A model generated the notes under the pieces. It was not told where the DNA came from, did not search any database, and saw only the letters and a program-made list of their open reading frames with translations. From Octopus sinensis (Eukaryota): a stretch of 24,330 bases of DNA. The position numbers and the translations under genes are program-made. The stretch is taken from assembly GCF_006345805.1 (NCBI RefSeq), contig NW_021836349.1, positions 1 to 24,330 on the forward strand, written 5' to 3'. Positions 8,450 to 21,987 of the stretch are shown one piece after another (the first letter of the stretch is position 1; the number at the start of each line of letters is the position of its first letter).

Positions 8450-8551
8450 ATGATTTTCTTGCTCTTATTTCGATTATTCAGCTTGGAAATGCTGCGATAT
8501 TAAAGGACGCGAACTCTGACAACCTGGATGAGCTTTTAATTGAATTAGAAC
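8450..8551 (+). CDS. VWA gene first identified coding exon: signal peptide and acidic propeptide
   Basis: Strong donor C|GTAAGT at 8551/8552. The frame reads FLALISIIQLGNAAILKDANSDNLDELLIELE. The ATG at 8450 (ACACCATGA) is one base out of frame, so it needs one extra T in the T4 run. Alternatively the exon starts at acceptor TTCAG|8482. Confidence 0.65.
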
Positions 8552-8690
8552 GTAAGTTGAATAATTTTTTCTTTTATTCTTCTACTTGCTTCAATCGTTA
8601 GATCGCGACCACGCTGGGGCACCGCCATGAAGAATTTCTAGTCGAATAAATCGACACTTATTTTGTTATTTTGTTAAAAGCCTAGTACTT

Positions 8691-9245
8691 AGGCGGCGAG
8701 TTGGCAGAGTGGTTAGCACGCCGAGCGAAATGCTTAGCAGTATTTCGTCTGCTATTACGTTCTGAGTTCAAAATCCGTCGAGGTCGACTTTGCCTTTCAT
8801 CCTTTCGGGGTCGATAAATTAAGTACCAATTACGCAATGGGGTCGGTATAATCGACTTAATCCGTTTGTCTGTCCTTGTTTGTCCCCTCTGCGTTTAGCC
8901 CCTTGTGGGTAGTAAAGAAATAGGTATTTCGTCTGCTGTTACGTTCTAAGTTCAAATTCCGTCGAGGTCGACTTTGCTTTTCATCCTTTCGGGGTCGATA
9001 AATTAAGTACCAATTACGCAATGGGGTCGGTATAATCGACTTAATCCGTTTGTCTGTCCTTGTTTGTCCCCTCTGCGTTTAGCCCCTTGTGGGTAGTAAA
9101 GAAACAGGTATTTCGTCTGCCGTTACGTTCTTAGTTCAAATTCCGCCGAGGTCGACTTTACCTTTCATCCTTTCGGGGTCGATAAATTAAGTACCAGTGA
9201 AACACTGGGGTTCATGAAATGCACTTAATTCCCTACCCAAGCTGC
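8691..9245 (+). mobile_element. SINE family C multimer: one tRNA head plus three bodies at 184-bp spacing
   Basis: Head GGCGGCGAGTTGGCAGAGTGGTTAGC. TATTTCGTCTG recurs at 8741, 8925 and 9109. Confidence 0.85.
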
Positions 9246-9426
9246 CCTTGTGGCAAAAATTTGAAATCATCATCATCATCATTATTTTTATCATTGCTGT
9301 TATTGTTGTGGTCGTTCTTGTTGTGATCATCGTCGTTTTTAAGCGCAATTGCGTGACTTCCAGCATTCTTATTCTGTCTCCCCACTGTTTCCATATAATT
9401 TATTAACTTATTTTTTCTTTTGTTAG

Positions 9427-9471
9427 GAAAACGAAGTAACGACGTTATAGAAGATGATGTTCTGGCTAAAA
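9427..9471 (+). CDS. VWA gene micro-exon (45 nt, phase 1-1): (R)KRSNDVIEDDVLAK
   Basis: Pyrimidine tract and TTAG acceptor, A|GTAAGT donor. Open in frame with both flanking exons and creates the RKR basic site. Confidence 0.75.
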
Positions 9472-9636
9472 GTAAGTGCACACCAACTCCGCATTTGTCT
9501 CTCTTTGGCTTTCTTGTCCAAGAATTTAATCATTGATCCAAAATATTTTTCGATTATAGGGAATATCGCCATAAACATTTTTGCCGTAAGAAGCGTTACC
9601 GTATTCACAATAACAGAGCTAATTGTATAAGCATTA

Positions 9637-10035
9637 TCTCTCTCTATATAAACGGCAGTTTGTCTGTCTGTGTGTCTGTCAGGTTGTACCCTCACCCTGA
9701 CCACGGCTTTCAACCGATTCTGATGAAACTTGACGCACACATAGCCAAATGTCATAATTCAAAACTAACGCAGCGAAAATTTTGAAAAGTTCCCCCAGTT
9801 CTGACAAAAATCGATAAATTCGACATGGGGTCCTGATCTAAGCTTTTTATATGCAACACATTTTCTGTCGGGAGACAGCTAGGAACATCGTATACATAGA
9901 AGTATTCGAGTGAAGAGAAGACATTGCAACCTACACATGCGCCTTCGTTCCCTAGAGGGAAAGAACTAGATTGGGATTAGTCGTTGCCTACTAGGGGCTC
10001 TTAAATACCCGGGCAACGCCGGGCTATGCTGCTAG
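9637..10035 (+). mobile_element. Non-autonomous Helitron, first unit of a tandem
   Basis: A|TCTCTCTCTATATAAACGG start, hairpin CCCGG-GCAACG-CCGGG (10008-10023), CTAG end (10032-10035). Confidence 0.85.
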
Positions 10036-10416
10036 TCTCTCTCTATATAAACGGCAGTTTATCTGTGCGTGTTTCTGTGTGTCTGTTTGCTTGTACCCTC
10101 ACCCTGACCACGGCTTTCAACCGATTCTGATGAAACTTGACACACACATAGCCCAATGTCATAATTCAAAACTAACGCAGCGAAAATTTTGAAAAGTTCC
10201 CCCAGTTCTGAAAAAAATCGATAAATTCGACATGGGGTCGACAATCAGAAACACGAACCACAAACTGTCTAGGGGACGCAACTCCACTTTTTTAACTAAA
10301 AAAAAAATTTACCATCATTTTTTTCCATTTTTTTGCTATTTTTTGGCTATAACTCTCTAAAAATGCTTTATAGTTATTTCCCTTACAAACTGAGCAACGC
10401 CGGGCGATACTGCTAG
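10036..10416 (+). mobile_element. Non-autonomous Helitron, second unit of the tandem (chimeric)
   Basis: Starts with TCTCTCTCTATATAAACGG immediately after the first CTAG. Its 5' ~200 nt match unit 1 and its 3' end matches the 4188-4585 family. Ends GAGCAACGCCGGGCGATACTG-CTAG|T. Confidence 0.85.
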
Positions 10417-10629
10417 TTTAAAATAAAAACAAAAAAAAAGGTTTCATAAATGCATTAAATTAAAAATGTCTTTATTCAATGTCTTTATTCAAAGTCTTGA
10501 GTAACGAAAAGGAAGCAGATTCAGAATATTTTCTGAGAATATACACTTTCAAGTCTTCTTCAGAATTGCAGTCGTTTGAAACGAAATGTTCGGCAAGTTC
10601 TGTCGAACTACTGTTATTGTGTATGAAGT

Positions 10630-11132
10630 GGAGGTGTAATGGCCCAGTGGTTAGGGCAGCGGACTCGCGGTCGTAGGATCGCGGTTTCGATTCCCAGACC
10701 GGGGCGTTGTGAGTGTTTATTGAGCGAAAACACCTAAAGCTCCACGAGGCTCCGGAAGGGGATGGTGGTGATCCCTGCTGTACTCTTTCACCACAACTTT
10801 CTCTCACTCTTACTTCCTGTTTCTGTTGTGAGTATTTATTGAGCGAAAACACCTAAAGCTCCACGAGGCTCCGGCAGGGGATGGTGGTGATCCCTGCTGT
10901 ACTCTTTCACCACAACTTTCTCTCACTCTTACTTCCTGTTTCTGTTGTACCTGTATTTCAAAGGGGCCGGCCTTGTCACTCTCTGTGTCACGCTGAATAT
11001 CCCCGAGAACTGCGTTAAGGGTACACGTGTCTGGGGAGTGCTCAGCCACTTACACGTTAATTTCACGAGCAGGCTGTTCCGTTGATTGATTCGGATCAAC
11101 CGGAACCCTCGTCGTCGTAACCGATGGAGTGC
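10630..11132 (+). mobile_element. tRNA-derived SINE (head A, tail X) with internal 119-bp duplication
   Basis: TGGCCCAGTGG A-box and GGTTTCGATTCC B-box. GTTGTGAGT...GTTTCT is duplicated at 10706 and 10825. An inverted homologue lies at 19301-19650. Confidence 0.85.
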
Positions 11133-20125: not shown

Positions 20126-20209
20126 CACTCCTACACACACACACACCACACACACACACACACACACCACACACACCACACACACACACACACATATATA
20201 TATATAACA

Positions 20210-20382
20210 AAGGCGGCGAGCTGGCAGAAACGTTAGCACGTCGGGCGAAATGCGTAGCCGTATTTCGTCTGCCGTTACGCTGTGAGTTCAAATTCCGCCG
20301 AGGTCGACTTTGCCTTTCATCCTTCCGTGTCTGTCCTTGTTTGTCCCCTCTACGTTTAGCCCTTGTGGGTAGTAAAGAAATA
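20210..20382 (+). mobile_element. SINE family C with internal deletion and (TA)n tail
   Basis: Same head and B-box as 8691 and 15511. It jumps from CATCCTT to GTCTGTCCTTG. Confidence 0.8.
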
Positions 20383-20459
20383 TATATATATATATATATA
20401 TATATATATATATATATATATATATATATATATATGTATATAATTTTTTTGCATTACAG

Positions 20460-20837
20460 GTTTCAATCTGAATACATATGATACTAGAGATGAAATATTA
20501 AACCATTTTGATCAAATGCATCAAACAGCCTTCGCGCCGCTCATAACGACCGCATACAACGAATCTTTCCGCGTAGAAAATGGCGGTCGCGTTGGAGCAC
20601 GTAAGGTGGCCGTGTTTTTCTTGAAAGGAAAAGCGCAAGATCCTGTACTATTAGCTGAAAAGGCGAAATTTGCCAGAGAGCACGGTGTTGAAATTTTTGT
20701 GGTTGCTATGGACCAATTGAATTCAAGAACGCTCTTGGAAACTCTCGTGTCCCCTAAAGAAGACGAACATATCTTGGAAGGTTATAACGAAAATATGAAA
20801 TTTTTGAGCGGTGAGTTCGCGCGCCGCCTCTGCACAA
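20460..20837 (+). CDS. VWA gene exon: C-terminal part of VWA domain 2 (378 nt, phase 1-1)
   Basis: TTACAG|20460 acceptor and A|GTAAGT donor. Reads (G)FNLNTYDTRDEIL...GGRVGARKVAVFFLKG...GVEIFVVAM...LVSP...RRLCT. Confidence 0.9.
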
Positions 20838-20875
20838 GTAAGTACAGTTTTTACACAAGCCCATTCTCTCACTCT

Positions 20876-21638
20876 TCTATCTATCTATCTATCTATCTAT
20901 CTATCTAAATATCTATCTATCTATCTATCTATCTATCTATCTATCTATCTATCTATCTATCTATCTGTCTGTCTGTCTATCTGTCTGTCTATCTATCTAT
21001 CTATCTATCTATCTATCTATCTATCTATCTATCTATCTATCTATCTATCTAAATATCTATCTATCTATCTATCTATCTATCTATCTATCTATCTATCTAT
21101 CTGTCTGTCTGTCTGTCTGTCTGTCTGTCTGTCTGTCTGTCTGTCTATCTATCTATCTATCTATCTATCTATCTATCTATCTATCTGTCTGTCTGTCTGT
21201 CTGTCTGTCTATCTATCTATCTATCTATCTATCTATCTATCTATCTATCTATCTCTCTCTTTCTATCTATCTATCTATCTATCTATCTGTCTGTCTGTCT
21301 GTCTGTCTGTCTATCTATCTATCTGATTGTCTGACACGCACATACGCACACGCACACACATCCATATATAAGTAAATCTATTCATACATACATATATACA
21401 TACAAGGGACGTGGATCCTTTTATATAAGTCCCGGGGTCGAATTGCTCGATTAAAGGCGGTGCTCCAGCATGGCCGCAGTCAAATGACTGAAACAAGTAA
21501 AAGAGTAAAAGAGTATACATATGCATACATATATACTTACACAAACACATCTATCTATCTATCTATCTATCTATCTATCTATCTATCTATCTATCTATCT
21601 ATCTATCTATCTATCTATCTATCTATCTATCTATCTAT
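20876..21638. repeat. (TCTA/TCTG)n arrays, with a SINE D tail fragment at about 21420-21510
   Basis: Directly visible. Confidence 0.92.
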
Positions 21639-21640
21639 AC

Positions 21641-21880
21641 CACTGGTTCTCTACTGGGGTTCTTATGACCCTTTGAGAGTCGAGGCGTGGTTCATATAAG
21701 ATTATGCTATTGGAGCTTATGAACAACCAACTGGTTTTACCTCTCCAATGCATAAAATATATTCTAAACAGTTTTTAATAATATTTAAGTATAAAAATAG
21801 GATTTCTTTTAACATGGGGGTCCAGTAGAGCAAAGTAAGAACTAGAGGGTTCCATGGGCAAAAAACGGTGAAAACCACTG
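21641..21880. mobile_element. hAT-type MITE
   Basis: Ends CACTGGTTCTC and GAAAACCACTG (imperfect CAGTGGTT TIR). 8-bp flanks ATCTATAC and ATCTAGAC match at 7/8, consistent with a hAT TSD. Confidence 0.7.
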
Positions 21881-21955
21881 ATCTAGACACATACATAGGT
21901 ATCAAACATCATACTACATAAATACTTTTTTTTTTTAAACCATCGTCGCTTCTAG

Positions 21956-21987
21956 AGTATGCATCAAAATTACCAAAAGACAATTAA
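21956..21987 (+). CDS. Probable terminal coding exon of the VWA gene: (K)YASKLPKDN*
   Basis: T-run followed by CTTCTAG|21956, phase-1 compatible, stop at 21985-21987. Candidate polyA signal ATTAAA at 22204-22209. Confidence 0.5.

Follow-up and report, generated by a model that had tools for sequence, protein, structure and literature searches.

A 24,330-nt stretch of the Octopus sinensis genome (positions 1–24,330 of contig NW_021836349.1, assembly GCF_006345805.1; hereafter the window) carries an intact-looking plus-strand octopod gene of at least eight exons. We read its product as a two-VWA protein of about 50 kDa, probably secreted, that would bridge components of the extracellular matrix, and we place the probability of this reading at roughly 0.78. 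The core of the gene, first described in an initial annotation made from the letters of the window, is real and lies far beyond chance. The predicted product comprises, in order, a split signal peptide, a short acidic segment, VWA1, a stalk of about 45 amino acids, a divergent VWA2 and a short tail. Judged by its sequence, the gene is an unannotated member of a two-VWA family present in molluscs, annelids, brachiopods and nemerteans. The main value of the finding is for annotation: a complete-looking, conserved member of this family is absent from public protein sets.

The exons join in a single frame. Six-frame translation placed AILKDANSDNLDELLIELE, SNDVIEDDVLAKS, CEGKPAEIVYIIDDS and a Pro/Thr run where the initial annotation had reported them. 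Exon 2 (8482–8551) and the six exons downstream of it yield an uninterrupted frame of 463 codons that closes with TAA at 21985–21987. We read every proposed border and found AG before each exon from 9427–9471 to 21956–21987 and GT after all but the last. All junctions between exon 2 and the terminal exon are phase 1, and the six donors reach 7.8–10.7 bits by a simple position-weight score. Exon 4 matched the Argonauta hians protein P0001, the orthologue described below, with 64% identity (tblastn, 4.6e-70), and tblastn with eight family members found no VWA-coding pieces on either strand of the window beyond the three VWA exons.

All of these exons lie on the plus strand. Exon 2 (70 nt) encodes LGNA, the end of the signal peptide, and then the acidic segment AILKDANSDNLDELLIELE; its final base opens an Arg codon, and its donor aac/gtaagt scores 8.4 bits. 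Exon 3 (9427–9471, 45 nt) encodes (R)KRSNDVIEDDVLAK(S), which carries a dibasic K-R, between the acceptor ttgttag and a gtaagt donor of 9.5 bits. The whole of VWA1, with a Cys at either end and the D-x-S-x-S, T and D of its metal ion-dependent adhesion site (MIDAS), is contained in exon 4 (14077–14640, 564 nt). Exon 5 (17226–17360, 135 nt) is a symmetric phase 1-1 cassette for the Pro/Thr stalk APTTIPPPTTTPPPTTTTTQPTTTTTLPTTTTTLPTTTTPMPKDE. VWA2 is divided between exon 6 (19088–19255, 168 nt), which supplies its N-terminal third (PCDKNIDVNFVFDSAMLGD...GPCEKVYG) with a degenerate DxSxS and a Cys that hardly varies across the family, and exon 7 (20460–20837, 378 nt), which supplies the remainder, has FFLKGK in place of TDG and ends in ...ARRLCT plus one base at the donor caa/gtaagt. 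A candidate terminal mini-exon of 32 nt (21956–21987) would add (K)YASKLPKDN and the stop; it is plausible and unverified. As a separate observation, if the donor at 14640/14641 were left unused, translation through 14637–14648 would stop after two further codons (...KACEGD) and give a single-VWA product.

Profile searches identify two VWA domains of unequal preservation. Counted from AILKD, the residues that follow LGNA, the product has 459 amino acids, a mass of about 50 kDa, an isoelectric point of about 5.1, five Cys and one N-glycosylation sequon. Pfam VWA (PF00092) matched the whole product at 3e-51 in two stretches, and scored separately VWA1 (124.8 bits) and VWA2 (58.7 bits) both pass the gathering cut-off of 23.8 bits. 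The tandem-VWA, multi-exon character of the gene therefore stands as first proposed, since Pfam finds both domains and the exons join in frame. So does the claim of one intact and one lost MIDAS. VWA1 has the complete site, with D-x-S-x-S in IIDDSRS, T in GGSTET and D in LTDGES, and an alignment of twelve family members shows D52, S54, S56, T128 and D158 of this domain to be invariant or nearly so. VWA2 retains the first Asp only, reading DSAML at the first motif and FLKGK where TDG is expected. Cys residues lie near both ends of each domain, with C225, C323 and C452 conserved and C452 invariant; the additional Cys of VWA2, in GPCEK, is kept almost without exception from octopus to brachiopod.

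The linker between the domains has the composition of a mucin-like stalk. It is 45 amino acids long, of which 24 are Thr and 12 Pro, a Thr/Pro-rich low-complexity sequence that bears out the Pro/Thr stalk of the initial annotation. A weak Pfam match to SSP160 within it is a composition effect only. Stalks homologous to this one are found in Argonauta, O. sinensis, Nucella and Patella and differ in length. Pfam returned VWA-type matches only for the product, with no chitin-binding, collagen, EGF, coiled-coil, LCCL or FN3 module, in line with the earlier statement that the first three are missing.

Octopod orthologues share this architecture. The best match, A. hians P0001 (automatically named 'collagen alpha-4(VI) chain-like'), has 462 amino acids and is 60% identical over 95% of the query. 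It has the same domain order, exon borders and phases, split signal peptide, Pro/Thr stalk, MIDAS-less VWA2 and terminal mini-exon; it differs in lacking the K-R, in an exon 3 two residues shorter and in a tail, SKKPACD, that contains a Cys. A longer orthologue of collagen VI/XII type, which would have spoken against a self-contained two-VWA gene, was thus not what we found, and because the Argonauta orthologue shares the architecture, the window protein is not a fragment of a collagen. A second orthologue is the O. bimaculoides protein A0A0L8HJQ0 (P0004), a partial sequence with 82% identity across the aligned part and 94% over exon 6; its model omits the Pro/Thr exon in frame.

Beyond octopods, the gene has many distant relatives of the same build. 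With exon 7 as the sole query, a full HMMER scan returned 235 proteins at E<=0.001, among them two-VWA proteins of about 410–470 amino acids from the scallop Ylistrum, the limpets Patella and Lottia, the annelid Owenia, the brachiopod Lingula and the nemertean Tubulanus. The window protein follows the family order of VWA1 with a MIDAS, linker, VWA2 with a degenerate MIDAS and C-terminal Cys, and its exon layout fits octopod members, with a split signal peptide, one-exon VWA1, two-exon VWA2, terminal mini-exon and phase-1 introns. The proteins of Ylistrum, Patella, Lottia, Nucella, Owenia, Lingula and Tubulanus share its layout, size and mid-VWA2 Cys, but are only 24–34% identical to it, and many of them lack the Pro/Thr stalk; Patella also has three-domain versions. 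In members that come from neither cephalopods nor gastropods, more of the VWA2 MIDAS survives, as in Owenia (IIDGET) and Tubulanus (VTDGK). A second protein search, with a query from which the Pro/Thr stalk had been removed, found no nearer relatives. Nothing in the sequence distinguishes the window gene from these many relatives, and the roles of the cephalopod members are themselves a matter of inference.

Family members tend to lie close together in the octopod genomes we inspected. In Argonauta, P0001 and P0003 are convergent, tail-to-tail neighbours (BAAFZT010000066.1, 16.44–16.52 Mb), as are P0006 and P0029 in O. vulgaris (OX597838.1, 30.10–30.15 Mb), and the O. bimaculoides locus (CM046625.1) holds three VWA gene models inside 22 kb. 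By analogy, a partner gene may lie just 3' of the window.

The 5' end of the gene differs from the initial annotation, which had placed seven exons wholly within 8450–21987 and started translation at an ATG at 8450 with the residues MIFLALISIIQ. At 8450 the bases read atgattttcttgctc, and the T run at 8454–8457, seen in atgaTTTTcttgctc, holds four T. The frame of this ATG is not that of AILKD (8494): it reads MIFLLLFRLFSLEMLRY and stops after 17 codons, and one extra T would be needed to obtain MIFLALISIIQLGNA. The AILKD frame has a TAA at 8434–8436 and no ATG downstream of it. The 30 nt before an AG at 8480–8481 are 73% pyrimidine, and the sole other AG in 8400–8481 is at 8415. Downstream of this acceptor, exon 2 opens with CTT GGA AAT GCT, encoding LGNA/AILKD, so that it holds the last four residues of the signal peptide and a -3/-1 cleavage pattern, with no initiator Met.

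Homologous genes place an intron at the same point. We mapped four annotated relatives to their genomic loci: the orthologue P0001 and its neighbour P0003 from A. hians, and P0006 and P0029 from O. vulgaris. In all four, exon 1 encodes Met and 13–16 hydrophobic residues before a phase-0 intron, and exon 2 opens three or four residues ahead of the predicted cleavage site (AVNA/AS, FGS/Y, FGQA/ML and FGQA/VK). Exon 2 of the window gene is homologous at both borders to the Argonauta exon 2 (AVNAASLKDVDELMLELE plus C/gtaagt), both exons ending GAA C/gtaagt. We therefore assign the acceptor to 8480–8481, because the signal-peptide intron sits at the matching point in these four homologues, and take 8450–8481 as the 3' end of intron 1, a polypyrimidine tract that contains the out-of-frame ATG at 8450–8452. 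That ATG is accordingly not the start codon, and the signal peptide seen upstream of AILKD arose because the T-rich tract was translated. The case illustrates a trap in which a chance ATG within a polypyrimidine tract mimics a signal peptide when translated by eye.

It follows that exon 1 is missing from the model and that the gene has at least eight exons. The protein of 474 amino acids proposed at first is reduced accordingly: 459 residues are confirmed, the four of LGNA are added and 11 are unsupported. Six of the seven exons fit by their AG/GT borders and phase, the 32-nt last exon being plausible and unverified, and the first was wrong. The initial annotation had also named, as a sign against itself, further exons outside its coordinates, and these are called for here, though only as a small exon 1.

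The seven-exon version could be rescued if the assembly had lost one T at 8454–8457, making the ATG at 8450 the start of an intronless signal peptide, MIFLALISIIQLGNA. Single-base homopolymer errors happen in assemblies, five T would give MIFLALISIIQLGNA followed directly by AILKD, a credible signal peptide, and the ATG stands in the context caccATGa. The sequence as given, however, has four T, a short run for a homopolymer error, and whichever frame is used, a T-rich tract translates as Phe, Leu, Ile and Ser, which makes a hydrophobic look expected by chance. A phase-0 intron interrupts the signal peptide at exactly this point in four of four homologous genes, and in the window LGNA is directly preceded by the corresponding pyrimidine tract and AG. 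We consider the lost-base explanation highly improbable and retain the split signal peptide.

No convincing exon 1 emerged from the sequence upstream. We searched 1–8481 for an ATG followed by 5–30 codons with a hydrophobic end and a phase-0 GT donor, and obtained only microsatellite-coded stretches and two weak candidates. The first, at 3269–3304 on the plus strand, encodes MPIRAFLAISVL and has a donor (ttg/gtgtct) of 2.1 bits, against 7.8–10.7 bits for the other donors of the gene; as one of 12 hits in a relaxed scan it is not significant, and it carries low confidence. The second, at 1253–1294, encodes MATLPSVLTIAGIC with a donor of 0.5 bits. Intron 1 spans 7 kb in Argonauta, so exon 1 of the window gene may lie 5' of the window by analogy. 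A chimera query of N- and C-terminal parts, aimed at transcripts over exon 1 or the tail, had no matches in a word-indexed protein search.

The 3' end can be compared with that of relatives. In Argonauta, O. vulgaris and O. sinensis, a phase-1 donor immediately after LC(T/K/R) is followed by a terminal mini-exon, so a terminal exon is expected after 20837 in the window too. Among the downstream phase-compatible acceptors, the one at 21956 ranks second by a crude score. Its tail, KYASKLPKDN, is unlike those of the relatives (SKKPACD in Argonauta, L in O. sinensis), and for this reason 21956–21987 stays unverified.

We also weighed pseudogenization, a recent decay or silencing of the locus that left its VWA exons in place but removed its first exon or promoter. 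Such decay would explain why no identical protein occurs in a collection of 5.8 billion proteins that includes several Octopus annotations. Also in its favour, the 8.4 kb upstream of exon 2, filled with repeats and a mariner remnant, yields no convincing exon 1, and the O. bimaculoides orthologue is known only from an old partial model. Yet 463 codons over seven exons contain no stop or frameshift, the splice sites are all canonical and strong, and every family-invariant residue is kept. The missing exon 1 has the alternative explanation of a position upstream of the window, given the length of the Argonauta intron. The missing protein likewise has one, as short exons and microsatellite-rich introns defeat gene predictors. 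We judge pseudogenization unlikely and favour an intact gene that is simply unannotated in its source, as the absence of an identical protein implies.

Public models of its relatives are visibly mis-built. The O. sinensis model P0002 (locus positions 7929–8051) opens with MYVCKHVFMYVCLYV, which is microsatellite-coded and lacks a signal peptide. P0004 begins with an unrelated N-terminus of 110 amino acids and runs into the intron after EKVYG. We attribute these errors to the short exons and to introns rich in microsatellites and SINE-like (short interspersed nuclear element-like) repeats.

Convertase processing, a further element of the initial annotation, found no support. The proposed site is E-R-K-R/S, with Glu at P4; the protein contains no R-X-[KR]-R site, and its sole R-X-X-R, RSIR, lies within VWA1. 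The K-R is missing from the Argonauta orthologue, which reads ELERDVGSNGD (exon 3 counterpart (R)DVGSNGDVLSKG), and from all aligned paralogues. A proprotein convertase that cut after ERKR would free an acidic segment of 20 residues, and in its favour the dibasic K-R follows an acidic stretch close behind the predicted signal cleavage site; PC1/3- and PC2-type enzymes cut dibasic sites in regulated secretion. Given the absence of a furin motif and of the K-R from every homologue aligned, and with a segment that is short and is no recognizable pro-domain, we regard such a pro-form as very unlikely. The K-R of this lineage is probably incidental.

The domain organization suggests how the protein could act in the extracellular matrix. 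As a bridging or cross-linking factor, it would bind a ligand carboxylate on collagen or another matrix protein through the metal site of VWA1, as collagen-binding integrin I domains do. VWA2 could provide a second, metal-independent contact or a surface for self-association, and the stalk, probably O-glycosylated, would serve as a flexible spacer between the two, and the odd Cys might take part in a disulfide between molecules. A more ambitious version holds that the MIDAS-less VWA2 is an old VWA subtype of molluscs, annelids, brachiopods and nemerteans whose nearly invariant GPCEK Cys would polymerize or cross-link mucus or soft matrix through disulfides, with a K-R newly gained in this octopus lineage adding convertase control; we rate this version as unlikely.

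Published work on related materials gives the family a setting. VWA proteins are documented from the skin mucus of octopus (PMC10138644), from adhesive mucus of gastropods (PMC10475054, PMC11178922) and from the byssus of mussels (PMC4754843); the window gene itself is the subject of none of these papers. The family is a reasonable candidate for cross-linkers of cephalopod soft-tissue matrix, mucus or adhesive. The papers on the argonaut eggcase, octopus skin mucus, the O. maya oviducal gland and Pif/BMSP that we consulted treat VWA proteins in general terms only, and we found no literature naming the window gene or A0A0L8HJQ0. Nor did we find expression or proteomic evidence for the window gene that would bear on the role suggested in the initial annotation, in cephalopod matrix, mucus or gland secretion.

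Several considerations weigh against the reading of the locus as an intact gene for a secreted matrix-bridging protein. Its first exon was not located and the candidates within the window have weak donors, leaving completeness and secretion unproven, and the terminal exon at 21956–21987 is a guess, if a plausible one. No transcript of the gene was found, its expression is undocumented, and the lack of an identical protein points the same way. What we say of ligand, tissue, glycosylation and disulfide pattern is inference throughout.

The gene lies in a repeat-rich neighbourhood. The window is AT-rich (GC 24–44%) and dense in microsatellites and interspersed repeats, and when compared with four octopod loci, among them those of O. 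sinensis, O. vulgaris and O. bimaculoides, it proves to be none of them and matches them only in interspersed repeats (85–96% identity). Upstream of exon 2, two open reading frame (ORF) pieces on the minus strand at 5241–6061 are the remnant of a mariner Mos1-like transposase (phmmer against PDB 3HOS, 9.9e-40); Pfam was negative on intronic and upstream ORFs and did not report this remnant. A SINE-like repeat with a 184-bp unit forms tandem arrays inside two introns, at 8740–9196 (2.5 copies) and 15559–16229 (3.6 copies), and recurs at 2537–2866 and 20115–20291; it is 88–91% identical to copies at the O. sinensis and O. vulgaris loci. Neither ARAGORN nor Rfam found a tRNA-like head in it, and Rfam and tRNA scans of the whole window were empty.

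Microsatellites lie close to the exons. An (ATT)n tract of 527 bp (13545–14071) extends as far as the VWA1 exon acceptor (...attattatcgtAG/GT) and occupies the usual place of the pyrimidine tract. Two (TCTA)n arrays lie at 20876–21324 (449 bp) and 1679–2109 (431 bp). The former starts 39 nt past the donor of the second VWA2 exon, and read-through into it yields 'IYLSIYLS' ORFs. At 143–562, a 139-bp unit is repeated three times with 98% identity and bears the duplicated small ORFs 190–351 and 329–490.

Structural comparison relates the protein to integrin I domains, collagen VI and a mussel byssal protein. The AlphaFold model of the orthologue P0001 has two alternating beta-alpha, Rossmann-like VWA folds (predicted local distance difference test scores of about 85–95 and 70–88) joined by a disordered linker. 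Its best single-domain matches are the I domains of integrins alpha1 and alpha2 (30% identity) and the N domains of collagen VI, with template modelling (TM) scores of 0.84–0.88. Sequence matches in the PDB are led by collagen VI alpha3 (2.7e-70), with PTMP1 second (1.9e-31).

Relatives of the window protein carry automatic names such as 'cartilage matrix protein-like', 'matrilin-like' and 'collagen VI/XII-like', and the better-known VWA systems share parts of its design. Matrilins, vitrin/cochlin and collagen VI arrays have homologous, Cys-bracketed VWA domains, vitrin being 22% identical over both. Unlike matrilins, the window protein has no EGF repeats or C-terminal coiled coil, and instead has a stalk as linker and a 10-residue tail; unlike collagens VI and XII, neither the 463-aa product nor its 462-aa orthologue has Gly-X-Y or FN3. 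Lacking EGF, coiled-coil, LCCL, FN3 and triple-helical modules, it is neither a matrilin nor a collagen despite the automatic names.

Molluscan shell proteins offer a second comparison. Pif and BMSP are likewise secreted molluscan VWA proteins, but the chitin-binding domain is absent from the window protein by Pfam. BMSP-like proteins with two tandem VWA domains have been reported from Lottia (PMC11291548), and a study of the argonaut eggcase matrix detected no homologues of Pif or BMSP there (bioRxiv 10.1101/2021.07.10.451900). We found no link of the window gene to mineralization.

The best full-length structural match is mussel PTMP1 (4CN8, 4CN9, 4CNB; Foldseek 1.5e-27), a secreted byssal protein of about 48.5 kDa with two VWA domains that binds collagens (PMC4754843). 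It differs in being only 22% identical and in having domains that abut without a stalk. Two further features belong with the considerations set against our reading above: each PTMP1 domain has a DxSxS motif and aligns with VWA1 of the window protein, not with VWA2, and the domain arrangements do not superpose (root-mean-square deviation of about 22 A over both domains, TM 0.37–0.45). PTMP1 packs two MIDAS-bearing VWA domains directly against each other, whereas the octopus protein joins one such domain to a MIDAS-less partner through a Pro/Thr stalk, and the resemblance between them is architectural only.

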